From: Octopus sinensis
Lineage: Eukaryota
DNA: 64,000 nt
NCBI RefSeq assembly: GCF_006345805.1
Contig: NC_043014.1
Coordinates: 33,170,001-33,234,000, forward strand
Reading direction: 5' to 3'
Shown here: positions 1,755 through 63,100 of the stretch, in pieces
Position numbering within the stretch: position 1 is the stretch's first letter
Layout: each line of letters begins with the position of its first letter
The notes under the pieces: generated by a model
Seen by the model: only the letters and a program-made list of their open reading frames with translations
Database searches by the model: none
What the model was told of the DNA's origin: nothing
Made by a program: the position numbers and the translations under genes

Positions 1755-4700
1755 GATATTTACTATGTGAACTATGTTGAAAAAATATGAGAAAGATATG
1801 GTATATCATTTTTTTTTGTGCTGGGGTTCTGTGAGACATTTTAAGGGTTACGCAAGGGTAAAAAGGTTGAGAAACACTGGTCTAATTTGTCTATCTGCAT
1901 AATTGCCTATATATATATATATATATACACACACACTATTGCTAAATTTTATTACTTTTAAAGGCACATAAAAAATACCCACTACACTCTCGGAGTGGTT
2001 GGCATTAGGAAGGGCATCCAGCTGTAGAAACTCTGCTAGATCAAGATTGGGGCCTGGTGCAGCCATCTGGTTCGCCAGCCCTCAGTCAAAATCGCCCAAC
2101 CCATGCTAGCATGGAAAGCAGACGTTAAATGATGATATATATATATATATATATATAATTAATCTAAGCAGCTAGGTGCAGTGTGATACCATAAAGGAAA
2201 AATTCAATCATTAAGTGTGATTAAACATGTCTATATATATATATATATATGTTGTGTGTTTGTCTATATGTACCTGGGTCTTGACATTATATGACAGGTG
2301 TAAATCAGTCTTCTGTGAAACACATCTGGCCATAGCAGAATATTACCATGCTTGGAAAAAAAAAGTGAAGGTTGGTGGCATTAAGGGCATGCAGTTTTAG
2401 AAAATCTGCCTCAAGGAATTCTGTCTAACCCATACAAGCAAGGAAAAGTGAATGTAAAAATGATGAAGCAATGGCAATGGTTTAGAGATGTTGGAGCTTA
2501 TTTTAAGACAAGTTTTTGGGTTGAGATCATCATCTTTTTATCTTTCGCTTGTTTCAGTCATTAGACTGCAGCCAAGCTGGGACACCACTTAAAGGAATTT
2601 TAATCAAACTAGCAGTATAGCCAAGCGATGCTCGGGCTTGTTTTCTTTTCGACCCTTTAGAATTGGAATCTTTGAAAAGTAAAAATTTTGCATTATGTAG
2701 CTTCTTATTCTCTTTAAGTGAACATTTTTCTGGTTGAAATACACCGAAAAATGGTGACACAGCAGTAAAAAAAATCGTAAAAATAGAGATTTTCATAGAA
2801 AAAAGCACCTTTTTGATGTAAATAATTTTTGGTGTTAACATGGTCCAATTTGAATTTTTTCTTCTACGTAATAAAGAGCAAGCCTTCTTCTATCATGCTC
2901 TCAATTTTGGTCAACTTGCGCCTAGGGTCTCGGAGGAGATAATGTTAATTGGGGGCTACCAAACCTGCCATACACAGACAACTTCAGCTTTATATATAGA
3001 GAGATTTAAAACTTACACTTTTAGAATTCCATTTCTCATTATAAGCATTTTCATTATCCTTTTGGGCCTCTCTGTTTCACCTCCATTTACCTAACTAGGC
3101 AATAGGTACTGGAGGTGGAGTGAAGTAAATTATTTGCATCCAGGAGCAGTAATAGATATCTTTCTTCACATGTTTAACCCTTTAGCATTCAGATTATTCT
3201 ATCATATGTAATGTTTATTTATTCACATTGTTTTGAATTAATCATACATTATCTCATAGCTTTGAGATTTCATTGATGTGTACAATGACACTCTAGATTA
3301 GATGTGAAAAGCTGTACATGGCCAGTTTTAACATAAAGCGAGGAGGAGATTTGGGCTGGATGTGTCCAGTTTAACTGCAAAAGTGTTATAATGTTGTCGT
3401 GCTATTGAAGTCTTAATATTAGTCCTGTTTTAATACATACTCTCTTTCTCAGAGGAGCAGGTCCAGGCTGCACTTCCAAGGAAATATCCAATCGGCTTTC
3501 AATTTTAAAGAACGAAACTTCCAGGTTGGACCAGCAGGAGAAGGCCCTCGACTCTCATAAGAGCTGTATACAACAAAGTATTAAAAATATCACTGAAGAA
3601 GCATCCAACAGTAAATATCATTTTTTTGTTTTTGTTTTGTTTGGTAATCTGATGGACATGTTATTGTTTTGTGTGGTGGGTGTTTGTGGATTGGATTTTG
3701 AGCACTTGGTGTTAACAGGGAAACGAAAAGAAAGAAGCTGCTAAGAAAGAGAGAGAAGATATGCAATGGCTTTACCAGCTGGAATCAGAGAGACTAGCTC
3801 AATAACATGTGTGATAGCATGTGTGATAAGAGAGAAGGAGCTCCATGGTTGCTGATTGGCTGTAGGCATGGCACAGAAAAAATTGTGTTTATAATAGTGA
3901 TGAGGTGTGAGAAGGACAGAGGTGATTACTGCATTGCCTCAAATCAGCCCTGATTAAGAAAATCCAGTCAAAGGTGTTTCAGTTTTGACTATCCCATTTT
4001 TTTTGTATTTTCAAGATTACTTTATCCAACATGTTCTTTTTTTTTTTTTTTTTTTTTTTTCAAGATGGTAAAGTGTTTTGTGAAGCAGTTTTGGTCAAAT
4101 AATCATAGATTCCCTCAGTGATTTGTGTATATATGTATGTTTATACAGTAGCTACAATATAGTAATCATCATCATCATCATCCAGTGTTTTAAATCTAGG
4201 TTTTGTTCCTGTTAACAGGGATGGCTGGATCTACCTCAATGCCATAGCAACTGAGGTAGGTAGGTGCAACCCACCCCAAACTTTGGGCTGGCTGGTGCCC
4301 ATTCTCCTTTGCTATCATGAGGCTTTCTTAGAGCTGGATTTTCTTCAGGGAGCATGCCCTTGCTTACCCCCAACCTCAGTATCTAGACTTGAGTGGTCCC
4401 GAGACTGAGGCCTCTACCACGATTTTTAAAGAATGTGGTGGTAAACTAGCTCAGGAAGGTAGGGATGCTACTCCCTGAGACCCCTTTCAGAGCTCCCCTC
4501 CCTACCTATAATGAATGTGAGAAAAACTGCTTTATGGTACTGGAAGCATCTACTCCAGGCAAATTGTAGCATCCCAATGCTTTCCACTTACTCAGCCTGT
4601 GCTGAGCCTTGAACTATCAAATGGACTGACTGAGTCACCAACGATGAAGTCTTGCTTGATTCATGCCCCAACACCAAGCCTTCTCATCTTACTTTGATAA

Positions 4701-7700
4701 TGATGCCTTTGGTAGTTGGGCCACATATGCTACATGTTAGATAAGAGGATCTTAAAGACTTGCTGTACAAGTAACTGACCTCCAGTAAGCGAACATAGAG
4801 ACAACATGTCCTCTCTATATGAACATTGAAAGGTGGGAAGACATTGTTAGTGATCTTGTTGTAGACTGGAACTAAACAAGGGTTTAAGCCTTTAGTGTTC
4901 AGATTATTCTGCCACTTATTAATTCATATTGTTTTGAACTAATCAAGCATTATCTTGTCACTTCAGGATTTTGATAATGTGGTCGTTTATTATTAGAATG
5001 ACATTATAGAGTAAATGGGGGAGGCCAGATCTGTCCAGTTTGAACATAAAACAGGTGGAATAATTTGGCCAGATTATGGCTGGTTCAAATGCTAAAGGGT
5101 TAAAAACAAGAACAGAAGCCAAAGCTTGCCAAACAAAACCAGGAAAATAGCACCAGGACAATACTTATTTCTTTATTGCCCACAAGGGGCTAAACATAGA
5201 GGGGACAAACAAGGACAGACAAAGGGATTAAGTCGATTATATTGACTCCAGTACGCAACTGGTACTTAATTTATCGACCCTTGCCAAAGCTGACTTTGTT
5301 TACCATTGTTCTGCTGCCAAAATGGACTTTATTTTCTTTCCTTCCATGGTTAATATACCAGTCTTGTACTAGAGTCAAATTTATAATGGCTTCATCTTTT
5401 TTCACAAGAAATTCATGGCCTTATTCCTATTTTAGAAGTCATTATTTTTGACAGGTTTTGTTGATATAATGTTAGGACATCTATCATGTGAGTTTGTGGC
5501 AGCCAGAAACTTTTATAGGCAGTGAACTGGCAGAATTGTTGTGCAAGACAAAATAGCTAAGCAACAATTTTTCTGGCTTTACATTCTGAGTTCAAATTTC
5601 ATCAAGGTCAGCTTTGTGTTTCATCCCTCAGGATCAATAAAGTAACAGTTGATCACTAGGGTTGATGTAATTGACTAACCCCTACTCACTAAAACTACTG
5701 GCTTTGTGATAAAGTTTGAAACCATTATTATTAAAGTGGCGAGCTGGCAGAATTGTTAGCACACTGGGCAAAATGCTTAGCGACATTCTGAGTTCAAATT
5801 CTGCCAAGGTCGACTTTGCCTTACATCCTTTCAGGGTTGATGAAATAAGTACCAGTTATGCACTGGGGTTGATGTAATTGACTAACCCCGTCTCTCAAAG
5901 TTTCAGGCCTTGTGCCTATAGCAGAAAGGCTTATTATTATAAAATATTAAAGCAAACTCTACTTCAATGTTCTTTTACAGATACCAAGATGGCCTATGTA
6001 AGTTATGAAGATGTTTGTAGTGTTTTTCCTGGGAGTATCTTGTTATCTGTACAGGCACCATCAGGGACACAACTTGGAGTACCACTGCCAGAAATAGTAA
6101 GTGGCAAAAATTCTTATTGTGTAAATGTCTTAAGGTGAGTTGTGTTACCACAATACTACAATTATAATTTTTCTGGGTACTAGTTGGGGGGGGGTAAATT
6201 TTTTAAGGAAAATTTCACTTCAGCATGATCAAATAAGTCACTGTTATTGGCATGTGGATTGACTTATAAGATACTGAGTAGGTTGGTTGATGTTTCAGTG
6301 TTAGCAATCTGTAATCATTTGTATTTAGGGGCACATTATAGATGTAGGCATGACTGTGTAGTTAAAATGTTTGCTTTGTTCTCTTGTGTCAAGTGTTCAA
6401 GCCTGGTGCATGGCACAATGGCCAAGTGTCTTCTACCATAACTTTGAGTTATTTCAAACCTTGTTAGTGAAGGTGGATAAAAAAATGTGGAAGCTCATTA
6501 AATGGTTTGTGCCTATTTTGAAGTAGTATATACTTAAACTGTTGCATGAGTTAACACCACATACACTCACCACCATTGAATGCTTTTAATGGAGTACACT
6601 GTTTTATATCCCTTATCTGAGGATAACAAGCTTCCTTCTTAGTCATAGGAGACCTTTGTAAAAAAAAAAAAATTATGGCTATATAATGTTTATAAATATT
6701 GTCATAGGCATGGGTGTAGCTCTGTGGTAAGAAGCTTGCTTCCCAACCACATAGTTCCAGTTTCAGTCCCACTGCAGGGCACCTTGAGCAAGTGTCTTTT
6801 ATAGCCTCGGGCTGGCCAAAGCCTTGGCGTGGATTTGGTAGACGGACACTGAAAGAAGCCCATTGTGTGTGTGTGTGTGTGTATATAATATATATATATA
6901 AATAGTATGTGTATCTTTGTGTTTGTCTTTCACCACCACTTGACAACCGGTGTCAGTGTGTTTATGTCCCCATAACTTAGTGGTTTGACAAAAGAGACTG
7001 ATAGAATAAGTACTGGGGTCAGTTCATTCTTCTAAAAATTCTTCAGTGCAGTGCCCCAGCATGGCTGCAGTCTAATGACTGAAACATGTAAAAGATAAAT
7101 TTATTTTCAAGGAACAATTTTTGTAGATAGAAAATTTAATGGATTTATGCCTGATTTTCTGAAATGAGATATCTCTAAAACAGTTTGAATTTCTGATCTT
7201 CTGATCATTGGTTATTATCTTATGTGCCTCTGTTCTTTAAACTATTTTCTTAGCTTCATTCACCAGTCATCAAATACCTTATTTCTTCATGCATAACATA
7301 ATATTAGGCTGAGGTCTTGAACATGCCCCTCCCCTTATTTCTAATGCAGAAACGCAATGCTATTTACTGCCCTGATGGATTTAAATTTCTCATTTTAAAG
7401 TATCTTGCATGCACACATACACACACATGTACTTTTGCCTTACAGACCTTTGTAATTTCTCTTTTACTCAGGTGAACCCTCATAAACATTTAATGTTTAA
7501 AATAGTTCCTATTGTATTTTTATAATTAAATATTAGGAATTGTATAAAATATTAAAATATTTTGTGCATTGTAGAAATATAATCAACTTATTGCACAAAT
7601 TTTAACAAAATCTTTTGTGGACCCCAGTTGAGAACTACTGATGTAAATTAAACAAATATTGTATTTAATTAATAATCATATGAAACATAGCTACATGTAC

Positions 7701-8439: not shown

Positions 8440-11400
8440 TTGTTGAAGAAACATGTTCTTTGTCTATCTACTTATCCTCTTTGTGATTTTGGATAATAAG
8501 AAAACTATACAAATGAGTCCTTCGAATTTAACTAAATTCTATATTTTAATGCAGCTGAAGATTGCTCTACATTTTAAAATTTATGTAATATTTGCATTGT
8601 TCAATTAAATGGAGTCGCATGAAACGATCGTACTGCATTATCTCTGGATATCCTTGTTGCTTATTTTGATTACATATATATATATATATATACACACATA
8701 CATACATACATACAGGGTGTCCCAGAAGTTGCACACCATCCTGGTTTTTTAAAAGAATACACCTTTATTGATTTCAAAAACACTTTATTGAAATTAATCG
8801 TAACAAATGCTCAAATTGAGCACCCTCTACAATAAAACATGCAGAATAAAATGTAATAAAATAAAATGCTTTAATTATTTTATATGTAAACCAGAATGGT
8901 GCACGACTTCTGGGACACCCTGTATATATATATATATATATATGAGCTAGACATTTTAAAGAATCCCATCATAGAAAATGCTGTGCAAAAAAACATGAAG
9001 TAGGATTACACACACATAAACCACCTCTGGGAATTTCTTTGACATGTGCTTGTCAAGGTACTTTTGTGAGAGAAAATTGCTTTTATTTGCCGTCCCTTTA
9101 CAGGTTACCATGAACATTTTTGTTAATCCACTTGTGGGACATAAAGGCACAAGCTGAGCAACGTTTTTAATGGAAACCCAGCAGATACCCATGCATTCAA
9201 GTTACTCCTGATCCCTTGCATTCAAGTTACTCCTGTATACACCACATACACTGTCCAAGGGAATAGCAAGGGCCAGTACAATTTGGCACCAGTGTCAGCA
9301 CAACCATTGCAGAAAGAATCCAAAGATCCAGAACAAATACCAGAAGGCATCCAACATTGACTATTCTCTCAATAAAGAGAAAGCTGACCTTGGGATTTAC
9401 ACCAAGGGTGCTGAACCTGAACAAATACGACAGTGTCTCTGGCAATTTGTTCTCTCTTTCATTCCTGCTCTCATTTCCTCTCTCTCTCAGTTTACCCACT
9501 TTCCAATCTCTGGTCCACTCTACTATATACACCACCTTGTAACTTGGGTGTATGATCCCTGTCTCTTCTCTTGTCACATCTACACCATTTTTCTTTCCTC
9601 GCTCCCTCTCTTCTCCATCTGAAGAAGCCATGCCTGACACCTTTCTGTCCTTCAGTACAATTCCCTCCACCCATTTGAGGAATCTTGTCCTGCAAGTTAC
9701 TTGGTGACTTCACTGTTGCTGGTGCTGTGTAAAAAGCACCCAGTACACTTTGTAAATTGGGTGGTGTTAGGAAGCGTATCCAACTGTAAAGAGTTTGGTG
9801 TAATCTTTTGGTTTGCCTGTTCTTTGTCAAACCATCTCAACCTATGCAAGCATGGAAAACTGGGCAGTAAATAATGATGATTCTGATGGTTCCCTCCCTC
9901 ATTTTCTCTCTCATAATCACAAGCACACATGCATACACACATCTAATGGAAATTTTAATTTTCTTTTTATATCTATTTGTCCATCTCATTTTTGTAGAGT
10001 CTGGCATTAAAAGCAATATCTTTATATTTTTTTTAATTATTTTTTTTTTAGGGCCCAGGTGTCTTAAGGAAGTACCAAATCCATTTGAAGAGTACGTCTG
10101 GTCCCATCAATGTAATGCTGGTGAATAAAGATACAGACACTTCAATTCCTGAAGTTGTCCAAGTTCCACCATACCATGATGATAAGAAGATGGAGATATC
10201 CCAGAAACAGATGTTGATACCTGCTGTCAACAGTGTGAAGTCTCCCTTAAAGACTCCACACAAACAGCTAAGAAAGGTATATCTTTGCGTTTTAAGAAAT
10301 TTAGAAAAGCTTTTAGACTTTGTGCACATTCATAGGTAATAGGAGTGGCTGTGTGGTAAGTAGCTTGCTTACCAATCACATGGGTCTGGGTTCAGTTTCG
10401 CTGTAAGTGGAACCCCCTCCTTTTTTGATAACAAATACTCCAGTTCAATTAATAAATTTTTTTTATTCCTTTTGTGTGAGTATTCCACTGGCATTTGTGC
10501 CTGTAACTTATTTTTCAGACAGAATCTGTGTAACACTGTTGTGGGACAAGGTGACCATTTGAATTACATTTGGTCATAGACATCTATCTATCCGCTCAGT
10601 CGAAGTCGACTCTCGGTTACTCGATGGATCAGTGTCCTCCAGTCAGTTCTATCCTGGGCCGCTTCTTTCAGATTGGCTATGTCCATTCCGGTATCACTCT
10701 TGATGGTGTCAAGCCAGCGGGTTCTTGGTCGGCCTCTTCCTCTCTTAGCCCGGGGGTCCCACTGTTTGGTACCATCATATTAGAATTCTTACACTTTTGA
10801 TCCATAGAGTATATTGGCCTGGTCTTTCCCCAGGCCAGAGCCGTTTAGCCAGCATACTTACCATATGCCGTTGCCAACCCCAGCACCACGGTTAGGAGAA
10901 CGGTTGGGCTTTGGAAGGGGGTTCTTAGACATATTAATACATATATACATGCAGACCTGCATACACACACTCTTTACATGGCACCAGCACAGATTTTATA
11001 GACTAATCCTCTTCATTAGGGAGAGCAGCATAAATACTTACACTGTGGAGGATGGGTTTTCTTGAGTACAGCAAGATACCAGATCCTTGGCCTTTGTCAC
11101 CTCTAAGGTTCAGTGCCCTGAGATCATCCTTTGTCCCATGTCTTCCTGGGTCTTCTCACACAAGTAGAAGGAATGAAATAAGTAAATAAATAAATGTCTA
11201 AGTAAAACCTACTAATTGGAAATAGAATCATGTGATGTCATTACAATTAACTGTTTTTTTTCTTGTCCTCACCCTCCTATTATTTTTCAGAAATCTCCTC
11301 TGAAAACACCTCTTTCACCTGTGAACCGAATGACCACACGATCATCACCACGCAAAATGTCTCAACCCTATACGAATATATTACGTATGTTATCTTCGAG

Positions 11401-14400: not shown

Positions 14401-16799
14401 TTTTGTCCTTATGTTGTTCTGTTGCTGGTGTTTTTGTTATTTTGAATTAAGCCATAGTAAACTTCACCTCTCATCCACCTGAGATTGTTAGTCATTTAGT
14501 GAGTATTGATTAAAACACTACCCAAAAGTTGTAGTAAACCCTGTATTCATGTAACAAATGGGGTGGGGGAAGGTATCTTTTTTCTTCACAAATGTAAATA
14601 AACCCAATCTGTTTCTTAAACGAGGGACATATTCATACGGCACAGAATGTTTTTTTACCTCAATGGACGTCTGTGATTGGTTAAAATTGCCGAAATGCTC
14701 GAAATTAAAGATGAAATATCTTACAACATATAGAATTTTCTCAATAAACCAAGAAAAAAATGATGTTTTATAAACACATTCTACCAGTATATGAAGTTTA
14801 AAACTTTTTAGTTACCTAGAAATTATGTTAAAAACCGCCGTTGAAAAGGAAAAGATCCAATGTTACAAGTTATTTTGTTGTTGCTGTTGTTCTAGTAAAG
14901 TTGCTAGTTGTAGCTGTGATGTTGTTTAAAGTTACAGGGCACTCAAGCTAAATTTGACAGCATGAAAAGAAAAGGAAGCATAATATCCCATCCAAAAATT
15001 AAAATATTTTTAAAAATATCAAATAAAGCTGGGAACAATTTACTCAAAGTAGCTGTCCTCAACGTCGACCACAGTCTCAAGATGGCCCCCAAACCTGGAG
15101 CATGCATTCTTCACTGTGTTCTTAGGAAGATATTCAAACCACTCCTTGATTTTGGCCACTAGCTCAACCTTGGTGTTACAGGCGGTGTGGTTGGTGTCTT
15201 TCTCAACTGTGTTCCACACATAGTAATCCATGGGATTACAATCGGGGGAATTAGGAGACCAGGAACTTAATGCTGGTGAAGTTATAGAAATATTCCAACA
15301 ACCACATCTGACTCTTTTTGAAGGTATGGCAAGAAGGCAAATCCTGCTACCATGCTTATGGCCTTCCAGCAGCAACCCTCTCCAGCCATTGATTAACCAT
15401 AATCTCCAGCAGCTTCACATAGCTGTTTGAATTGAACCTAAGGCCCTGTTCATCGGTTGCTGGATGAATTCTAGTGTTTGTATGCAGTCAGAATGCCTGC
15501 TGTGTCCCTTCCTGCTGGCCACAGCCTTGTAGTCACCATAGCAGCTCTCCATGTCACATCTTACAGCCTTTACAGTGTCCATAGAGCATTGAGCAGTAGT
15601 CATAATGTCAGCATTTCATCATGGTACAAATCATCATGATGCAGGTAACTCTTTTCCAATATGCAGATGGCTTTCAATTCTCTATGTCAGCTAACTTTTT
15701 CTCAAATACAGTTTTGAGGTTTGTGCTCTCCAATGCTATTAACACCAAGCTGTTCCTGACAAAAAAAAGTGTCATAAAAAAATCATCAAATTTAGTCCCA
15801 ACTCCCTGTAGTTTAACAGGTCGGCTTGTAGCTGACAAAATCACTAATGTATTGTTTAACTAAAAGTTCAGTGGACCACGCTCTTCTCTCTCTTGGTGTT
15901 CTGGCAGAGAAGAATATTGTTAACTAAAATATAAGCAACGAAATTTGTGTGGTTGGGTTAGTGTGTTTGATGGTTTTTGTTATTGTTGTTGGTCAGCTTC
16001 ATGTCAGCAGTCCTTATTGAGCAGCCCTGTGATGATCAAAATCAATTCAGCTGTGACCATCTTCTCTTTCTTTCAAACATCGTATATTTACAACTTCATT
16101 ATCCAATATATTCTTTGTTTAAGATGATGTGGTGTGATATGAGGAGAGGAATATTTGGCTGCACTTTCCAGCAGGTCAATTGACTTGAATGTTGCATTTC
16201 TATGTGGATAGGAGCAGTTCCTAATTGGTAATTTTCCTTCAAAAATTTGACATGGATCTATGGACTCATCACAATTCTTGTTGCTGGTTTTTATGACATT
16301 ATGCAGGTCTGTTAGCAATCATCCTCAATGCCATGGCCATATCGTACCATTGAAGGAGCCTCTATGCAATTACTTGATTTGCTACAAGTAGCAGCTAAAT
16401 TGTCCTCAAATCGTATCCTGTTTTCTTTTAAAAATAAAAGACACATGTAGTCCTAAGTAAACACAAAAGTTAGAATATGATAGGAATATCCCAACAGGAA
16501 TGCCTTTTGATCATAGATCTGCTACCTAGGGTCTTACCTGGGGTTGCACAACAACTAGCTGTTTTAGCAAAATTTTGAAATTGAAATTTAAAAATCTAAT
16601 GCAGATCATGAATAAAATGGGATTTTTCTCCTTTTTTTTTTCCACAGGCTTGGAACCGTTGTTGCATCTAAGTCCTCCACCTAGTGAGAGGGATTACCAT
16701 TTCCATTTGGATGATAGTGAAGGCGTCTGTGATTTCTTCGATGTTCCTCTACTACCCCCCCATGCTACTGCTGCATCTTCAGCCACCCCCTTCTACTGA
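1024..16799 (+). CDS. E2F4: E2F4/5-like transcription factor, copy A (5'-partial; join of 1024-1133, 3453-3610/3614, 5981/5985/5988-6096, 10052-10276, 11291-11384, 12240-12326, 13898-13942, 16648-16799)
   Basis: Eight exons with compatible phases give one open frame of 984-987 nt. It contains the DNA-binding domain ([22 protein letters not shown]), coiled coil, marked box and C-terminal pocket-binding motif [17 protein letters not shown]. Exon 1 lies upstream of the window. The low-complexity exons 6-8 are less certain. Confidence 0.92.
2609..3004 (-). mobile_element. Non-autonomous Helitron (396 bp)
   Basis: On the minus strand it begins TC and ends CTAG, has a subterminal hairpin CCGAGC-ATC-GCTTGG, and is inserted between A and T with no TSD. 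The empty site is visible in the paralogous segment at 147/148. Confidence 0.85.
3453..3614 (+). CDS. E2F4: E2F copy A exon 3 (coiled coil); ends at 3614 (AT donor) or 3610 (GT donor)
   Basis: tctttctcAG|A GGA GCA GGT CCA GGC TGC; [53 protein letters not shown] aligns with E2F4 GVGPGCNTREIADKL...QQSIRNVTED. Confidence 0.93.
4560..4850 (+). mobile_element. Decayed RTE-clade LINE 3' fragment (boundaries approximate)
   Basis: Frameshifted translation [26 protein letters not shown] resembles the RTE C-terminus RWLGHV.RM.D.RIPKDLLYGEL. Confidence 0.5.
5981..6096 (+). CDS. E2F4: E2F copy A exon 4 (marked box N-part); start 5981, 5985 or 5988
   Basis: [36 protein letters not shown]|GTAAGT aligns with E2F4 [35 protein letters not shown]. 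Confidence 0.93.
6707..7097 (+). mobile_element. tRNA-derived SINE family 1 (representative copy)
   Basis: A/B-box-like head (TGTGGTAAG...GTTTCAGTCCC), shared body ACCTTGAGCAAGTG...GAAAGAAGCCC, internal (TG/TA)n, tail GACTGAAAC...TAAAAGA. Confidence 0.75.
8713..8922. mobile_element. Tc1/mariner-type MITE (210 bp)
   Basis: TA|CAGGGTGTCCCAGAAGTTGCACACCAT...ATGGTGCACGACTTCTGGGACACCCTG|TA; about 35-bp TIRs with TA TSD. Confidence 0.85.
10052..10276 (+). CDS. E2F4: E2F copy A exon 5 (marked box C-part plus linker)
   Basis: (t)nAG|GGC CCA; [27 protein letters not shown]...KQLRK|GTATAT; matches E2F4 [21 protein letters not shown]; phase 0-0. Confidence 0.92.
10581..10757 (-). mobile_element. 5'-truncated RTE (BovB-like) LINE 3' end
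   Basis: Minus-strand frame [52 protein letters not shown] followed by a short GATA-like tail; resembles the BovB C-terminus. Confidence 0.85.
11291..11384 (+). CDS. E2F4: E2F copy A exon 6 (S/T-P rich)
   Basis: tttttcAG|AAA TCT CCT...TTA C|GTATGT; [31 protein letters not shown]; phase 0-1 fits its neighbours. Confidence 0.75.
11808..12171 (+). mobile_element. tRNA-derived SINE family 1
   Basis: Full head-to-tail copy GGTGCAAGAGTGGCTGTGTGGTAAG...GGTTCAGTCCC...AAATAAAAGAA in intron 6 of copy A. Confidence 0.8.
12240..12326 (+). CDS. E2F4: E2F copy A exon 7 (low complexity, predicted)
   Basis: attttgcAG|CT CAT ACC...TTT A|GTAAGT; open in phase 1-1 ([28 protein letters not shown]). Supported by splice signals and phase only. 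Confidence 0.6.
13898..13942 (+). CDS. E2F4: E2F copy A exon 8 (45 nt)
   Basis: cttactttcAG|GT GGT AAA GAA TTT ATT GAT GAT CTT GGC TTC ATC TCA GCT GAC G|GTTCGT; [14 protein letters not shown] is positionally equivalent to E2F4 LLEELMSSE; weak donor. Confidence 0.65.
14935..15808 (-). mobile_element. Deleted Tc1/mariner (maT/DD37D-like) element
   Basis: TA|CAGGG...CTAAATTT TIRs at both ends; minus-strand remnant [21 protein letters not shown]...KNACSRF...SYFE. Confidence 0.8.
16648..16799 (+). CDS. E2F4: E2F copy A last exon (pocket-protein binding / transactivation region, TGA stop)
   Basis: tttttccacAG|GC TTG GAA CCG; [49 protein letters not shown], compared with E2F4 [31 protein letters not shown]. 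Confidence 0.95.
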
Positions 16800-24598: not shown

Positions 24599-26325
24599 TG
24601 ACCTCACTCTCCAGTGGGCCCTCTTCGCAACCCTCACACAAACCAGATCACTGACGACCCCAAGGAATGCGCAGAACTCATTGCCGAGTGCTATGCAAAC
24701 ATATTCACTGTTGAAAGTCAAATGTACCATCTTCACCATCACTAACAGCAAACTCCATAACAACTATGGAATTTACACCTGCAATGTTGCGACGTCACCT
24801 TCAAAATAAAGCGCAACTATGCCTCCCCTGGTCTCGATGGAGTTACATACCTGCTTCTCAAACGTGGCAGGCACTCCTTTTACACCAGCTTTCTATTTTC
24901 TTCCAGTACTGTCTCAACAATGGTGCTACTCCGGAGCAGTGGAAAACTGCCAGTGTCATTCCTCTGTTCAAAAAGGGCGACCGCACATCACCTGTCAACT
25001 ATCGCCCAGTCAGTCTCACTAGCTGTATTGCAAAACTGATGGAATCGTGTGTCAGAGAAACACTCTGGAACTTCTGGAGCTCTCACAGTCTCATCCGACC
25101 CTCACAATATGGATTTGTCCCTAACTCCAGCTGCAGTGACCAGCTTGTCGAGTTCCTTGAGGACATTACTCAGATCACTGACAGTGGCTCATGGGTGGAT
25201 GTTGTCTACTTGACTTTGCTAAGGCTTTCAACTCTGTGCCACACAAAAGGCTTATGGTGAAACTCTCTGCAATGGGTGTGGGGATGACCTTTTTAACTGG
25301 TTGAAATCCTTCATCCTCAGCCGAAAGGAGGTAGTCACAGTTCTAGGACAGCACTCTACCCATATGAGATGTCATCGGGTGTACCACAGGGATCTGTCCT
25401 TGGTCCCCTCTTGTTTGTGCATACATTAATGACATAGATGCCAATTTAAAGAATGCCACAGTATTGAAATATGCAGACGACATCAAGCGTACCTTGAAAT
25501 CAAGAGGACAGATCCTGATGTCTACAACTCTTCCTGCAATCCGACCTAGACACAATGCAGCAATGGATCACAGACTGGCAACTGAAACTGGCTGTGGACA
25601 AATGTACCACCATGCATTTTGGGAGAAAAAACCTGCGTCCACATACTCCCTCCACAACACTGATATCAAGAAATCCTCTTGCGAGCGTGACCTAGCATCA
25701 CTGTCAGCAGGATTTGCGTTGGACAAAGCATATCTCTAAATTGTCAAGAAGGCCGAGGGTGTCTTGGCATCACTCAGCAAGACTTTTGTTAGTCGCTCTC
25801 AGCCATCTATTTAAAACTGTATACAGCTATGGTACAACCACACTTGGAATTCGCATCATCAGTTTGGAACCCCTATCTTGCTCAGAACATTGACCTCCTG
25901 GAATCTGTCCAGAGACGTGCAACCAAACGCATACCCTCCATCAAACCTACCATATTCTGAGTGCCTTGTTTCCCTGGGCATGGATTCACTGAAGCTCCTG
26001 TGTCTGGCGACGGACTTGGTAAACGCCCACAAAGTTATCAACAACACTGACACACCTTTTTGATCTCCATGTGTCTAACACCGTGGACATGCCCACAAAG
26101 TCAGAAAACAACACAGCTCCCATGACTTTCGGAAACATTTTTCACGCTCAGAGTTGCTGAAGCATGGAATAAACTGCCTGCGTCAGTTGTTGACTGCCAT
26201 GACACTGCTCCTTTAAGGCCCTCATGCTTTCCGAATCCGCCGAAACTACACCTGATTATATATACACTTTAGATGAGTTGTAGTGACCCTGAGCACTGTA
26301 CACAATTATTTATTATTATTATTAT
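24599..26325 (+). mobile_element. CR1/L2-clade LINE, 5'-truncated, frameshifted reverse transcriptase
   Basis: WKTASVIPLFKKGDR..NYRPVSLTS..KLME, QYGF, PQGSVLGPLLF (from 25381), KYADDIK; ends in an (ATT)n tail. Confidence 0.92.
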
Positions 26326-36881: not shown

Positions 36882-37001
36882 ATGATGGCTGCAACCGATC
36901 ACACCACACCCAGTCGACACGAGAAGAGTCTTGGACTACTCACCACCAAATTTGTATCTTTATTACAGGAAGCCAAAGATGGAGTACTTGATTTGAAAGT
37001 G
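36882..37001 (+). CDS. E2F4: E2F4/5-like copy B exon 1 (start codon, DBD first half)
   Basis: tag ATG ATG GCT GCA ACC...AAA GTG|GTGAGT; [40 protein letters not shown]; in-frame TAG immediately before the ATG; phase-0 donor matches the exon 2 acceptor. Confidence 0.96.
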
Positions 37002-47847: not shown

Positions 47848-49054
47848 TGTCGGGTCATTCCACAAGTAATGTCCGGACTTCTATATTTTCAATTTGTAAA
47901 TGCTTTAACAGTATTTTAGAATGTCCAATGACATCAAGTGATATTACATGTATTTGGACATATTTAAACTAATTAAATTTTATTTTGCAGCATAATCTAA
48001 TTGAAATTTCACTAATTATAGCTCCTGAAACCTGGAAGTGTCTAAGGAGCATTTGAGGTACATAATGCTTTATGAGTTTAAAAAAGGGAACTCTGTAACT
48101 GAAGTGACTCGAAATATTCACTCAGCTTATGGAGAAGAAAGCCAGAATGAAAGACCTTCCAGAAGAGGGTTTGTAAAATTCAGAAGTGGAGATTTCAGCC
48201 TTGAACACGAGGCCCGAATAGGATGTCCAATTGAGTTTGATGACAAGCTCCTTTTGGCAGAACTTAAAAAAGATCATGCATCTTCAGTTGAAGAATTGGC
48301 AAGCAAGCTTTGTTCAAGCCATACAACTGTTTATTGATAACTTCAACAGTGTGGAAAGGTCCCAAAACTCGGAAAATGGGTGCCTTGTGATTTGTCTGAA
48401 ACCAACTGCAAATCCCGAGTGGACATCTACTCTTCTTTTCGTTCTTGTGAACTAATCTCGCCCTTTTTGGACAGACTGTTGACCTGTGAGGAAAAATGGG
48501 TCTTTTATCAAAATGTGAAGTGTCGTACCCATTGGCTTAGTAAAGGATAAAAGGCCCAACCACAAGCGAAAAGGGAACTCCATGGGAAGAAGGTTCTTCT
48601 CTCTGTTTGGTGGGATTGCAAAGGAGTCATCCATTGCTACCAACTAATGCAACAATCAATGTTCAAATCTATTGTCAGCAAGCAGAGCAATTGAACGCTG
48701 CTTTGAAAAAAAAAAAAGGGCCAGCTTTAGTGAATCGAAAGGGAGTAGTGTTTCATCAGGGCAATGCAAGACCCCCACACTGCAAAGATCACATCACAGA
48801 CCTTGCTCCTTCCAATTACCATTTGTTCCATAGTTTACAGAATCATTTGGATGAATTAACTCTAGAAACAACTAGAGAAGTCGAAACTGACCTTTCAGAG
48901 TGCTACTCTTCGAAACTGAAAAGGTTTTCCACTAATGGGATTAAAAAGCTTACGAGTACATGAAAAGACGCCATGGAAACTATATTGATGATTAAGTTTC
49001 ATTTAAATGTTTTCGTTATTAAAATCCGGACATTACTTATAGGATGACCTGATA
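47848..49054 (+). mobile_element. Near-full-length dead mariner element (1207 bp)
   Basis: TA-flanked ~33-bp TIRs; frameshifted transposase SKEHLRYIMLYEF..., WVP, TCEEKW, HQGNARP, LAPSNYHLF. All three catalytic Asp positions are altered (E, G, N). Confidence 0.92.
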
Positions 49055-57735: not shown

Positions 57736-60035
57736 TATGTAATATCCTGATCACTTGACATTCATTTAATTACATACATGTGTGTGTGTCTGTGTGTTTG
57801 TATATGATCCAGGGATCCAAATGTAGGGAATTTGTAAGCTTGAAGCAGTAGGTGGTTAGTATAGAGAAAAAATGGACAGTATATGGTAAGACACAATCAA
57901 TAACTATTTATTGACATCAAGAGCTACATGTGTTTTCGCATACTGAAATTGTAAAAAAATTTGTTCAGTGGATAGTTTCTATACACTGTTAGCAACTAAT
58001 AGTGCTAAAAATGTGATTAAAATTCCAAACTGAAGGAGTGGAATAGGTAAAATGTAAGCTATATGCATTTCTTAACTGGTTGAAGCTCATGCAAGTGTTG
58101 CACAATGAACTTTCTTCAGCATAGCTAATCATCAGGCTAAAATTACTTTAATGAAGTTTACATTGCTGCATGGAATTCCTAAGTCAGCCATAACACAACG
58201 GTGAGTCCAACTGAATAGCAAAGTCAATAGTAAAGAATAATAAAGACAAAAGTTGAGAGAACCAATGAACATTTTAGCACAAGGTAAGATCCAAAATATG
58301 CATAGAGTGGGAGTGGTTTGGAGTCAAAGAGTAGGAAGCAAAGGAAAGGAAAGGAAAGAAGAAAAAGATTATGGGAAATAACAGGGTATGTATTGGGGTA
58401 ATAAAACCCTTTTCAAGAGATGTTGACTGCAGATTTTGGTAGATAGCACGCCAGGCGAAATGCTTAGCGGTATTTCGTCTGCCGTTACGTTCTGAGTTCA
58501 AATTCCACTGAGGTCGACTTTGCCTTTCATCCTTTCGGGGTCGATAAATTAAGTACCAGTTTCACACTGGGGTCAATGTAATCGACTTAATCCCTTTGTC
58601 TATCCTTGTTGGTTCCCTCTATGTTTAGCCCCTTGAGGGTAATAAAGAAATAAGATTTTGGCAGACAGTATGTTGTCCAAATTTATGTGAGTGAATGGGT
58701 AGCGAAGTCAGATTGTTCATGCCATCTGCTCTATTGGGGTTACCATACAGCTTGCAGGACTATTAACCCTGGGAGAGGTGGGAGATTAACTTCATGTTAG
58801 GGGACAAGGGGTTAAACTGTGAGAAGGAAGGGAGGTTCTTCTAAATATTAACACCAGTCCATACCAAGTAATATTCTTCAAAGACGGCATTTCTGGCATT
58901 TAGAACTTAAAAATGAACTGATGACAAACTTAATTCTTTTTATTGAAAGACACTACAAAATACCAGTCATGGATTTGAATCAAAAGCCTATGGACCAGTA
59001 ACCTACTACATTATCTGCTGACATTGTTCATCACAGTGTTCTATAATGTTGGTTGTTGTTTAAACTCAGATCATTGTCTCTGACCTTTAAGATGATGGGG
59101 TGGGGTATAATTAACCCTTTTGTTGCCATATTTCTGTTGACATATAATGCTTTTGTTTCAGTTTATTTTTAAAATAAAGAATTTAGTGGAATAACTTTCT
59201 CATTATTGAGCTGGGGGCTGGAACAAACTGACATAAAATTTCAATGGAAGATTATAATTTAGATCACATTAAAACAGTAAGTTTGTCATAGAGCCAGGGA
59301 CACTCTCAGGTAGTTTGGTTTTCAAAGGTTTAAAATAAGATGTGGTTGCTTTTTCTAGCTTGTTTAGTTATCACATTGAAGTTCCCCTATTGCTATATGT
59401 GAAGGTGGTATTGTTTAGCCCTGATCAATCAAATACATTCCGGTTGTGACCATCATGCCTTTTACCTATGTGCAGGAAACTCAGGACCACATCATCCTCT
59501 TTTTTTTTTATGTCCATTGTCCATGTTGGCATGGGTTGGACAGTTTGACCAGGGCTGGTAAGGCTGTACCGGGCTCCAGTCTAATTTGTCTTGGTTTTCT
59601 ATGGCTGGATGTCCTTCCTAACGCCAACCACTCAGAGTGTAATGGGTGCTTTATGTGCCACCGGCACAGGTGCCATTTGCATGACACTGATATCTTCCAC
59701 GACTGCAATTGTTCTCAGCATGATGGGTTTTCTTCTCAAGCACTACATAATGCCAAAGGCCCAACATTCGAAAGGAACCCAGCCACTTTGATCCATGTGG
59801 CTCAACACTCAAAAGGAACTCAGTCACATTGCCTGCATTTAAAAAAAAATTTTTTCCTAACTTGGAAATGGGTGATTTGACTGCTAGTTGGAGCAAGTCA
59901 GCCAACCACCACATAGGTACTCACTAACTGGCTTATATCTAATGTTTATAATGGTGTTGGTGTGTGGTCTGGTGTGGTGTAGCAGTGATACTGCTGAAGT
60001 TTTTTTTAACCCTTCTCTCTTAATTTCTTTTACAG

Positions 60036-60145
60036 GCTGCAGACACATTAGCTGTGCGACAGAAACGACGGATATACGACATCACGAATGTTCTAGAAGG
60101 AATCGGATTAATAGAAAAGAAATCAAAAAACAGTATCCAATGGAA
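60036..60145 (+). CDS. E2F4: E2F4/5-like copy B exon 2 (DBD second half); gene continues past the window end
   Basis: ttttacAG|GCT GCA GAC...TGG AA|GTAAGT; 110 nt, protein identical to copy A exon 2. Intron 1 is 37002-60035 (23,034 nt). No exon 3 homolog found before 64000. Confidence 0.96.
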
Positions 60146-63100
60146 GTAAGTATGCATTCCCATACATCATCCTGTAATGCACCAGGACACATTGTGTTTG
60201 ATGTTTCCTGGGTTCGTTAGGTATTTTAGGTCTTTCAACATTAGACAGCCTCACCCAGATGACCCAGCTGGGATTAAAATCAATCCCCAGTTTTGTCTAG
60301 TTGGCACTATCTCTGGATCCCTGGTAGCAGTGCCCCTTCCAGGGTTTGCACCTCCTGATCTGCAGTCAACTTGAAGCAGCCTTTGCTGCCTCCACAACCA
60401 ACCTAATGGTCACCTGCCTTCTGGCCCTTTTCATTCCAAGCATATTACTGTAAGCTCTGTGGAGGGACTGACTTACAAACCCTCTGTACCCCACCTTGAT
60501 GGCAACACACCTTACTTGCCACTCATTGCTTTGGCATAGCTCCACTTGGTCATCATATTTTCTTCCTCGGTGCTAAAAACAATAATGGTTTTAGATTTTT
60601 GGTACAAGGGCAGCAGTTTTTGAGGAGAGGGGGAAGCTGATTACATCGATCCCAGTATTTTACTGGTTCTTATTTTATTGACCCCAAAAGGATGAAAGGC
60701 AAAGTCAACCTCCGTAGAACTTGAGCATAAAAATGGGCAAAATTCCACTAAACATTTTGTTTAATGTGATAATGATTCTGCTAGCTTACCACAACAACAA
60801 CAATAATAATGGTTTTAAATTTTGGCACAGGGGAGTAGGTAAGTTGATTATATTAACCCTGGTGCTCAACTACTGCTTATTTAGTTGACCCTGAAAGGAT
60901 GAAAGGCAAAGTTGACCCCAGTTTGTCATGTTTAATAAAATTAGATGACTTTAAACTGTTCAGATTTGTGCAATTCCAAAGGGTAGTATTGAATTATATG
61001 GATGCCAACTCCATTTTGTCTTCTTATTAATGGTGGGTGGTTTAAATGTTTAAAGGATACCAAAATATCTAATTCAGTGGTTCATAAACTGGCAAATACC
61101 ACTGAATTTTTGGTATCCTTTAAACATTTAGCATTTAAACCAGCCATATGAGGCCCAAATATCCTATTGGTTTTATGTTCAAACTGGCCAGATCCAGCCT
61201 TTCATGCACATCTTACAATGTCAGTTTAAAAATAATCACGTCTTCAAAATCTCAAATCTGGCAGATAATGCATGATTAATTCATACCAGCATGAAAGACA
61301 GACATTAAACAATGATGATGATGAATAAATAAGCATTATATTTGACAGTAATCTGAATGCTAAAGAGTTAAACTGGCCATATCTAAACTGCCCAAATATT
61401 TGTTTTATGTTCACCCCCAGCTAGTTTCAGCTCTCACATCTACCTTACAATGTCATTCTGAAAATAAACAATCACATTATCAAAATCTCAAATCTGTGAG
61501 ATAATGCATGATTAATTCAAAACGATATAGATAAATAAGCATTACATTTGACAGAATTATCTGAATGCTAAAGGATTAATCTTATCTGTAGTAGAGTTAC
61601 TATGTAACCATTTCATGTCATTTCTGTATGGCTTCTTTGTGTTTCCTCTAATAACTCACAACTTTCTCTGATTCAGGAAAACCCCTTCCCAACAGTTCTC
61701 TTGTTTTCTGTAAATCCCACAAACTTAAATTTGAAAGCAGCAATATATGATGAACTCGCACACCCACTCACCCTCTCTAATCCCTTGGTCCACTTCACAG
61801 TATACACCTCTCTGTAATTTGAGTGAATGGATTCTGTCCTCTGTCCTCCTCCCTGGCAAGTTCTCCATGTTTTCACCATCTTCTCTATCTCTCTCTTCCC
61901 CCACCTGAAGTAGCCATGTTTCTCCTCTAATGCAAAACACCTATTTTTCCATCCCTCACTATAACCCCCCCACCCATTTGAGGGGTCTTATCCTGCAAGT
62001 TACTTCACTTGGTGAGCTTACTGCTGCTACTGGTACCACCACATAAAAAGCACCCAGTCCACTCTGTAAAGTGGTTGGTCTCAAGAAGGACATTCAACTG
62101 TAGTAGAGCCTTGCCAAAGCAGGCAGCAGAGCCTTGGTGCAATCTTCTGACTTGGCCAATTCCTGTCAAACTACCCAACCCATGCCAGCATAGAAAACAG
62201 ACATTAAATGATGATGATGGTGATGATGATGATGATGATTTTCTCTTCACACCAGTTGTTGCCATGATGATAATCTTTGTCATGAGGTAAATTTTACCCT
62301 TTTATCCCTCTTTGACTCTTGTACAGCATGACAGACAAGCTATTATGAAATCTGACTTTTTCCATTCTTTTCTCTCTTGACATTCACTCCTTCTGTGTTT
62401 CTTTATTTTTCCATACCATTTGCTTTGTGTTTTTCAAATTTTTCCATTACGTATGCTCACTTCTGTTTTTCGTCAATAATTTAACTCATTACCATCCACT
62501 CCCCACCCATACAGTTCATCATACCGCTTTAGCTGCTGGCCTCTTCTTCAGTATGTTTACATCCAGTCCACAAGCTCAAAAGACCTGATCTAGAATAACT
62601 TTCCCAGGCTTAGCTTTTATACATTGAAGAATGTGGTAATTTATTCAAGATGGATGCATTCGTATACAATATATCCTTGCCATGGCTCAACGTTTACTGT
62701 AACAGCTGGTTGCAGAAATGATGAAATATCTTGCGCAATATTTCTTAGTTTCATGTATAAATCACATGCAAAAAAAAAAGAGTGGTATATAAAAAAAGTG
62801 CAACTTATATACACAAATAAATAATCTATTTATGTTTGTGTGATGTGTGTATAACAAAACAGGAAATTGAAAATTTTTTCTTATTTATTCACCATTACAT
62901 GTGTTTCATTTGCTAATAGAAATTACAAAGTTTTACATGTTAGATAGACATGTAAGGAATTTTCCTGTTAGAAATTCTTGACAGAGAAATCATATAGTGC
63001 ATATACATGTGTGTGTGTGTATATATATTACTCTTTTACTTATTTCAGTCATTCGATTGGGGCCATGCTGGAGCATCGCCTTTAGTTGAGCAAATCAACC

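Follow-up and report, generated by a model that had tools for sequence, protein, structure and literature searches.

Tandem E2F4/5 genes in the octopus window

The window, a stretch of 64,000 nucleotides (nt) of Octopus sinensis contig NC_043014.1, contains two tandem E2F4/5 paralogs on the + strand, here called copy A and copy B. The present analysis concerns intron 3 of copy A, in which degenerate splice signals of the minor (U12-type) spliceosome lie a few bases away from candidate sites for the major (U2-type) spliceosome. The Octopus vulgaris chromosome record OX597833.1 aligned with the window at 93-99% identity, indicating that the window is octopus DNA, and the O. bimaculoides alignment gave 86-92% identity. 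Copy B carries the annotation 'E2F5-like' in both O. vulgaris and O. bimaculoides. Its exons 1 and 2 lie at 36882-37001 and 60036-60145 (+), exon 3 lies just past the window end, and its U12-type intron 3 is about 0.5 kilobases (kb) past the window end. The fetched copy B loci reach back to about 27.1 kb of the window for O. vulgaris (L001) and to about 20.2 kb for O. bimaculoides (L002), and copy A ends at 16.8 kb, with gaps of 10 kb and 3.5 kb, respectively, between copy A and the fetched loci.

Exon 1 of copy A is located upstream of the window. Exon 2 (1024-1133, +), which encodes the end of the winged-helix domain (AADTLAVRQ...NSIQW-K) and ends at the donor GAA/GTAATT (in splice-site strings the slash marks the exon-intron boundary), was 100% identical to E2F4/5 proteins by tblastn. 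Exon 3 (3453-3610, +, when its end is set by the U2-type donor, and to 3614 with the ancestral junction) encodes part of the coiled coil, and exon 4 (5981-6096, +) encodes the start of the marked box and ends at ATA/GTAAGT. These are followed by exon 5 (10052-10276, +), exon 6 (11291-11384, +) and the last exon (16648-16799, +), which encodes the pocket-protein-binding tail with the stop codon; exons 7 and 8 were not recognised by tblastn of the window. The E2F winged-helix domain, the CC-MB (coiled coil-marked box) domain and the C-terminal pocket-protein-binding motif are all present, and the top homologs of copy A in the protein search were E2F4/5 proteins. The Pfam matches to PF02319 (E2F_TDP, 59 bits) and PF16421 (E2F_CC-MB, 97-98 bits) were far over the cut-offs, indicating that the exons flanking intron 3 are genuine E2F exons.

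Copy A and copy B pair together in a neighbour-joining tree. Over exons 3 and 4, the synonymous difference (pS) between them was 0.82, which is saturated, and the non-synonymous difference (pN) was 0.215. No blastn alignment was obtained between the two copies for exons 3-4 or for any intron flank, except for a patch at exon 2, and the duplication is, judged from this divergence, an old one. Within the patch (980-1137 vs 59992-60149), exon 2 and 44 nt of the preceding intron are 94% identical, and the exon differs by six synonymous and no non-synonymous changes, which looks like local gene conversion across the DNA-binding exon.

Ancestry and splice signals of copy A intron 3

The junctions orthologous to copy A intron 3 were read from fetched genomic loci, and a published minor-intron table supplied the E2F4 donor. 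In O. vulgaris as well as O. bimaculoides, intron 3 of copy B is textbook U12-type (CA/GTATCCTTTAC ... TTCCTTCAC-N14-AG), its 5' junction reading AGT CA/GTATCCTTTAC and its 3' junction reading TTTTCCTTCAC-N14-AG/G TTG GCA TAT. In the chiton Liolophura (5' CA/GTATCCTTG, 3' TTTTCTTAACAGTTTGCAG/A), the gastropod Gigantopelta (5' CG/GTATCCTTAC, 3' AACCTTAACGTAATTCAG/A) and the bivalve Pinctada (5' CA/GTATCCTTAT, 3' TTTCTTTAATGAATAATCAG/A), the intron begins with GTATCCTT, ends with AG and carries the branch boxes TTCTTAAC, CCTTAAC or TTCTTTAAT 9-11 nt before its end. Rodent E2F5 from Peromyscus (5' AA/ATATCCTTC, 3' TTCCTTAAC-N14-AC/G) and the sea urchin gene (5' AG/ATATCCTTTC, 3' TCCTTAACTCTTTCACAC/A) share the arrangement ATATCCTT ... 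TCCTTAAC ... AC. All of these orthologous introns are in phase 2 and interrupt the codon just ahead of L/F-A/S-Y-V. In the minor-intron table for human and mouse, the E2F4 and E2F5 donors are CTG/ATATCCTC and TAG/ATATCCTTT (PMC6717393), and they fit the NSC and NNR codons at the copy A intron 3 junction. No intron was found at this position in Nematostella (L005 5034-5081) or in the cnidarian-like genomic open reading frames (P0121-P0135), in all of which exons 3 and 4 are continuous, suggesting that the U12 intron is absent here in cnidarians, where it was lost or never gained.

These junctions point to a U12-type intron at this position across bilaterians, of the AT-AC subtype in deuterostomes and the GT-AG subtype in molluscs, and the comparison gives good support to a U12 origin for intron 3 of copy A. 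Since copy A pairs with copy B, the ancestral copy A intron most likely had the form GTATCCTT...AG, i.e., the GT-AG subtype. The original prediction that this is a U12 intron position of the E2F family agrees with the U12-type introns of copy B (two species), chiton, gastropod, bivalve, rodent E2F5 and sea urchin, and its statement that vertebrate E2F genes carry a U12 intron here agrees with the matching E2F4 and E2F5 donors in the table of PMC6717393. Its implied view of ATATCA as a worn ATATCC donor needs to be corrected, because all four mollusc lineages have GTATCC...AG, and the changes in copy A were most likely +1 G>A, +6 C>A and last base G>A. It had also regarded GT-AG termini without an ATATCC donor in other molluscs as evidence against itself; these are literally the termini that the molluscs have, but the introns concerned are U12-type and begin with GTATCCTT.

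In copy A, the 3' end of exon 3 reads ...GCA TCC AAC A/GTAA/ATATCATTTTTTTG and the 3' end of the intron reads ...CAATGTTCTTTTACAG/ATAC/CAA/G ATG GCC TAT, the additional slashes marking alternative boundaries. At the ancestral junction the reading is AA/ATATCATTT ... TTCTTTTAC..AA/G. The degenerate U12-type donor ATATCATTT (3615-3623, +) starts at the same nucleotide as the ortholog donors GTATCCTT or ATATCCTT, and the weakened U12 branch box TTCTTTTAC (5970-5978, +) matches TTCCTTAAC at 7 of 9 positions with a single A remaining. The ancestral 3' intron end is AA (5986-5987, +), where AG is found in all four mollusc lineages and AC in deuterostomes; the G ATG of exon 4 follows from 5988, and an AC lies at 5983-5984. 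The only candidate branch A, at 5977, precedes AA/G by 10 nt and AC by 7 nt. The 10-nt spacing equals that of the chiton intron (TTCTTAAC-AG-N5-AG); U12 branch sites lie 10-15 nt upstream of the 3' splice site, and the spacing is just below their optimal distance of 11-13 nt (PMC3584512). Read from AT to AA, the intron spans 3615-5987 (+; 2373 nt, phase 2).

A candidate U2-type donor, ACA/GTAAAT (3611-3616, +), has its GT at 3611-3612, 4 nt upstream of the ancestral junction, and this GT derives from a Ser codon AGT that is also present in copy B. The candidate U2-type acceptor AG (TGTTCTTTTACAG/A; 5979-5980, +), written at fuller length as TTCTTTTACAG/ and ending at 5980, precedes the ancestral 3' end by 7 nt, and TTCTTTTAC doubles as part of its pyrimidine tract. 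With these two sites the intron spans 3611-5980 (+; 2370 nt, phase 1). The intron interior is mostly repeat, including short interspersed nuclear element (SINE)-like dispersed copies (5581-5899, +; families D1 and D2) with many blastn matches elsewhere in the locus, and only the final ~45 nt are unique.

Relative to copy B, the copy A donor carries +1 G>A and +6 C>A, the last intron base carries G>A, and the branch box has one A where the TTAAC core has AA. The donor ATATCATTT matches the AT-AC consensus at 8 of 9 positions and the mollusc form GTATCCTTT at 7 of 9, and tested over its first nine intron bases against the almost invariant U12 5' splice site pattern (/RTATCCTT), copy A does not conform. 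Among the nine sequences compared, copy A alone has a base other than C at +6. In about 1370 published minor-intron donors of human and mouse, this position is C in 1311, T in at most 56, A in 5 and G in 1 (PMC6717393), and the C>A change corresponds to a penalty of about 8 bits calculated from these counts. Scores were taken from listed k-mers identical to those of copy A, with the published position weight matrix (PWM) cut-offs for minor introns of 50 for the donor and 65 for the branch site (PMC6717393). The sole listed ATATCA donor, from human RNF123, is identical to the copy A 9-mer ATATCATTT and scores 59/100, and the 12-mer TGTTCTTTTACA (5968-5979) is identical to a listed mouse Flnc branch site scoring 71.2/100. 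U12 introns have AT-AC or GT-AG termini, rarely AT-AN or GT-AT. AT-AA introns are a rare natural U12 subtype (8 of roughly 1300; PMC1557818 Table 2), and changes at +4 to +7 of U12 donors have been reported to activate nearby cryptic U2 sites (PMC2831892). A sequencing error may lie behind ATATCA, but it would leave the four other changes unexplained. Given how far the signals have decayed, most of the five changes are predicted to be shared by O. bimaculoides. Both U11 and U6atac would face an A-G mismatch at +6 of the copy A donor.

The resemblance of ATATCATTT to a U12 donor was also compared with chance. Matches to ATATCCTTT with at most one mismatch numbered 36 in the window, vs 30.0 +/- 5.6 expected, so these are not enriched, and their frequency is about 3e-4 per position per strand (36 in 128,000). 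Taken by itself, the motif has no significance. A chance origin of ATATCATTT was rejected by position and not by frequency: it occupies the exact donor nucleotide of copy B and five other animals, and because matches occur at only about 3e-4 of positions, the resemblance is inherited. Two perfect GTATCCTTT nonamers (61052-61060, -, and 61113-61121, +), 60 nt apart, were observed in copy B intron 2, and RTATCCTT occurred 7 times in the window vs 5.6 expected, with no excess; the paired nonamers are probably due to chance or are part of a repeat. In the O. bimaculoides assembly (L002 31133-31675), the copy B exon 3 end and its U12 donor are duplicated on both sides of an N run, most likely as an assembly artefact.

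Candidate U2-type site pair and competing readings of intron 3

All strings and coordinates given for copy A intron 3 in the original prediction were found base for base, and the three junctions that it proposed translate as it described, all in frame: 3610^5981 (GT-AG) gives NNTKMAY without a stop, 3614^5985 (AT-AC) gives NSNKMAY and 3614^5988 (AT-AA) gives NSKMAY. The AT-AC junction was judged unlikely and is the weakest of the three, having a branch distance of 7 nt and adding an extra residue. The AG at 5987-5988, one base past AA, lies 11 nt from the branch A, which is the optimal distance, and it is out of frame and leads to a stop with either donor. The original prediction invoked U12-to-U2 conversion by splice-site shifting, and the use of a cryptic U2 donor close to the former U12 site is a known way in which this happens (PMC3584512). 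The proposal, also in the original prediction, that copy A is escaping rate-limiting minor splicing is speculation.

Splice-site strength was compared with about 14 reference sites from the two genes. The hexamer of the candidate U2 donor is the same as in the annotated copy B intron 5 donor (AAA/GTAAAT), the site is no weaker than the copy A intron 2 donor (GAA/GTAATT), and the candidate acceptor is nearly identical to the copy B intron 1 acceptor (TTTCTTTTACAG/G). The GT...AG termini keep the frame, and their strength is normal in relation to the reference sites. The GT at -4 reads GTCAGT in copy B and GTAAAT in copy A, and in the chiton the branch box is followed immediately by an AG that is likewise at -7; in the junctions compared, the -4/-7 GT-AG pair was found neither in copy B nor in any other ortholog. 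The candidate donor GUAAAUAU pairs with the 5' end of U1 small nuclear RNA (snRNA) at 7 of 8 intron positions.

Intron 3 of copy A is proposed to have been converted to U2-type splicing with GT-AG use dominant, a reading to which we give about an even chance of being correct; the use of this site pair by the cell is predicted from sequence. The intron would descend from the U12-type intron of the GT-AG subtype that is still present in copy B and other molluscs. Its signals would then have decayed, with the donor changing from GTATCCTTT to ATATCATTT, the branch box losing one of its two adenosines and the terminal AG becoming AA. Removal by the major spliceosome would use the staggered pair ACA/GTAAAT (3611, -4) and TTCTTTTACAG/ (end 5980, -7). 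The -4/-7 shift adds three bases and keeps the frame, so that the phase would change from 2 to 1 and Ser would be replaced by Asn-Thr, giving one extra residue in the coiled coil-marked box linker. This reading is favoured because it would be exceptional for a functional U12 intron to combine A at +6 with AT-AA termini and a one-A branch box, and because a former U12 intron with decaying signals beside a working U2 pair would be expected to look just like copy A. In addition, once the former GT and AG are gone, the new sites no longer have partners that would cause a frameshift, which also favours conversion.

Several observations weigh against conversion. Word-indexed and exhaustive HMMER protein searches yielded neither a transcript nor an annotated protein of copy A. 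The AT-AA junction keeps the 10-residue linker of 86/86 clean homologs and scores 1.6 bits better vs Pfam CC-MB, an advantage that either reading would predict, since the old junction was inherited. An annotated AT-AA intron at this position would be called 'minor' by the published PWM criteria (59 > 50, 71 > 65; PMC6717393). Moreover, 7 of 9 donor positions survive although the intron flanks of copies A and B are unalignable and synonymous sites are saturated, indicating that the U12 donor was constrained for most of the history of copy A; this constraint may still hold, and any conversion would be recent relative to the duplication, or incomplete. The U2 donor, with A at -1 and +5, is also weak by vertebrate standards.

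That intron 3 is still a U12-type AT-AA intron (3615-5987) with a weak donor and branch site, the nearby GT and AG being bystanders, is possible but rather unlikely. AT-AA and other AT-AN termini are natural and U12-competent (PMC1557818), and the subtype has already switched once in animals (GT-AG in molluscs, AT-AC in deuterostomes), and the AT-AA form could mark a step in a switch from GT-AG to AT-AC. The published table has entries, both above the cut-offs, identical to the donor 9-mer ATATCATTT and to the branch 12-mer TGTTCTTTTACA, the branch A is at a chiton-like 10 nt from AA, the conserved linker length is kept, the motif is retained despite silent-site saturation between the paralogs, and copy B, too, has the Ser codon that supplies the GT at -4. 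However, three handicaps would coincide in such an intron, namely A at +6 (~0.4% of donors), AT-AA termini (~0.6%) and a one-A branch box with a U-U mismatch, whereas each listed precedent pairs one weak element with a strong one; an out-of-frame AG at the optimal branch distance lies 1 nt on, and a competing U1-type site overlaps the donor. The use of both pairs in a true hybrid intron, giving two isoforms with Ser or Asn-Thr at the coiled coil-marked box linker in a ratio that could depend on tissue or minor-spliceosome activity, is considered unlikely. Both pairs are in frame and of middling strength, mixed-signal introns form an intermediate class with a partial response to minor-spliceosome inhibition (PMC11347168), and annotated mammalian E2F5 variants have one extra residue at the same junction (NNSTFSYV). 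Against this, alternative splicing involving U12 introns is reported to be rare (PMC3584512), and binding at the overlapping U1 and U11 sites of copy A would be mutually exclusive. U1 is far more abundant than U11.

Copy A looks like a live gene, because its six exons (~300 codons) are open with no stop or frameshift, its other splice sites are all canonical and pN is 0.215 vs a pS of 0.82. It is very unlikely that it is instead a silent or dying duplicate, in which splice signals drift without selection and the question of the spliceosome is moot. In favour of silence, copy A appeared in none of the protein searches, comprising word-indexed searches with a 203-residue model, exons 3+4 and exons 5+6+last, in an index that missed copy B, and an exhaustive HMMER search with exon 5; the best matches to the copy A queries were 54-79% identical. 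In addition, copy B is annotated in two octopus species and no matching annotated protein for copy A was found in these searches, exons 7 and 8 were not recognised and exon 1 lies outside the window. The absence from the protein searches is weak evidence, as octopus RNA assemblies seem to be absent from the searched collection (copy B has no Logan source in it) and the index misses true relatives, copy B among them. Apart from the open exons and the pN and pS values, the zero non-synonymous vs six synonymous changes in exon 2 and the ancestral residues that copy A keeps and copy B has lost (GTQLxVPxPEIGPG..KYQIHLKS) speak against silence. Copy A may be unannotated, mis-modelled owing to its odd intron, or silent. 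Finally, it is highly improbable that another U2 donor, TTG/GTAATC at 3644, is joined to the AG at 5980 (3643^5981). Its frame is open, the junction is in frame and it has the consensus G at -1, but it would insert 11 mostly hydrophobic residues into a linker whose length is fixed in 86/86 clean homologs, and no homolog has such an insert.

A perfect U2 donor consensus (TAT/GTAAGT, 5998-6003) was also observed inside copy A exon 4, 18 nt past the candidate acceptor, in the codons Tyr-Val-Ser, where copy B reads TAT GTT AGC. Use of this donor would produce a 17-nt micro-exon, and it is probably silent.

Comparison with known introns and additional observations

Burge, Padgett and Sharp (1998) reportedly described the conversion of U12 to U2 introns through the activation of a cryptic U2-type 5' splice site lying close to the U12 one. 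Copy A resembles that system in its ancestral U12 GT-AG subtype, which converts most often, in donor changes within +4 to +7, in a U2-type GT only a few bases away and in the direction from minor to major. It differs in that both ends would shift (-4 and -7), with a phase change from 2 to 1 and one added residue, in that an unconverted tandem paralog lies about 60 kb away, and in that the use of the U2 site is predicted here. It is established that minor introns can become major ones, a cryptic U2 donor close by being one of the routes (PMC3584512, PMC2831892; survey in PMC10639083), and copy A intron 3 would be a neat further case of this and not a surprise. A comparatively large number of conserved minor introns is found in molluscs, Octopus sinensis among them (PMC10639083).

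The known AT-AA U12 introns (e.g., RASGRP4; 3 human, 4 mouse and 1 Arabidopsis, PMC1557818) share with copy A the AT...AA termini, a U12-like donor and a branch box located some 10 nt before the intron end, but the listed ones were picked for good U12 donors, and copy A adds A at +6 and a weakened branch box. The E2F genes form a classic minor-intron family, E2F1-6 being listed as minor-intron genes (PMC6717393, PMC6865273), and the E2F-family U12 intron has the gene family and codon position in common with copy A; vertebrates and sea urchin have AT-AC and molluscs GT-AG, whereas copy A has neither and is alone in departing from TATCC. 'Minor-like' or 'hybrid' introns, described as transitional on account of their mixed signals (PMC11347168), likewise show such signals at introns orthologous to clear minor introns. 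The minor-like introns of that study carry the minor consensus at one junction together with AG at -2/-1, whereas in copy A one set of signals is offset from the other by 4 and 7 nt.

As a rule, conversion is deduced by comparing distant orthologs, which leaves intermediate steps and expression effects invisible. In the octopus, the 'before' (copy B) and the 'after or during' (copy A) states would stand side by side in a single genome and in a family of cell-cycle transcription factors, and the value of the case lies in the unconverted paralog alongside and a fully traceable substitution path. If the shifted GT-AG pair is used, this would be a well-documented double splice-site shift at the cost of one residue and a phase change, and the gene pair could serve to examine whether E2F expression is limited by minor splicing. 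If AT-AA is used, it would be an unusually degenerate functional U12 intron, informative for intron classifiers. If both pairs are used, the major and minor spliceosomes would compete on one intron, a living conversion intermediate, in an animal with many minor introns and with copy B as a built-in control, in which the effect of leaving the minor pathway on the expression of a cell-cycle regulator could be tested directly. Either way, annotators expecting canonical signals may mis-model or drop copy A.

In vertebrate E2F4/5 annotations, 'RYP' inserts were observed at the same junction (QNSRYPLSYV, NNRYPFKFSYV) in bird E2F4 and rodent E2F5 (P0070-P0072, P0080, P0106, P0110, P0117). RYP is the translation of ..A/ATATCC.. 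read into the intron, and these inserts seem to be errors of annotation arising from the AT-AC U12 intron. Some E2F5 models of mammals and birds (P0040, P0042, P0050, P0055, P0075) with NNSTFSYV instead of NNRFSYV contain one extra residue, and Peromyscus E2F5 (L004 ~15895-15909) has an AG 3 nt before the AC (GACAG/TAC/G), which fits an AT-AG variant of the U12 intron. If this variant is real, the linker would tolerate one added residue.

An Rfam scan of the window gave zero matches, indicating no snRNA gene nearby. Fragments of open reading frames resembling reverse transcriptase of retroelements without long terminal repeats (non-LTR) and Tc1/mariner-type transposase were found at 24715-25890 (+), 48544-48960 (+) and 15043-15414 (-), and the window is rich in dispersed short repeats and (TA)n-rich tracts, which is ordinary octopus repeat content.

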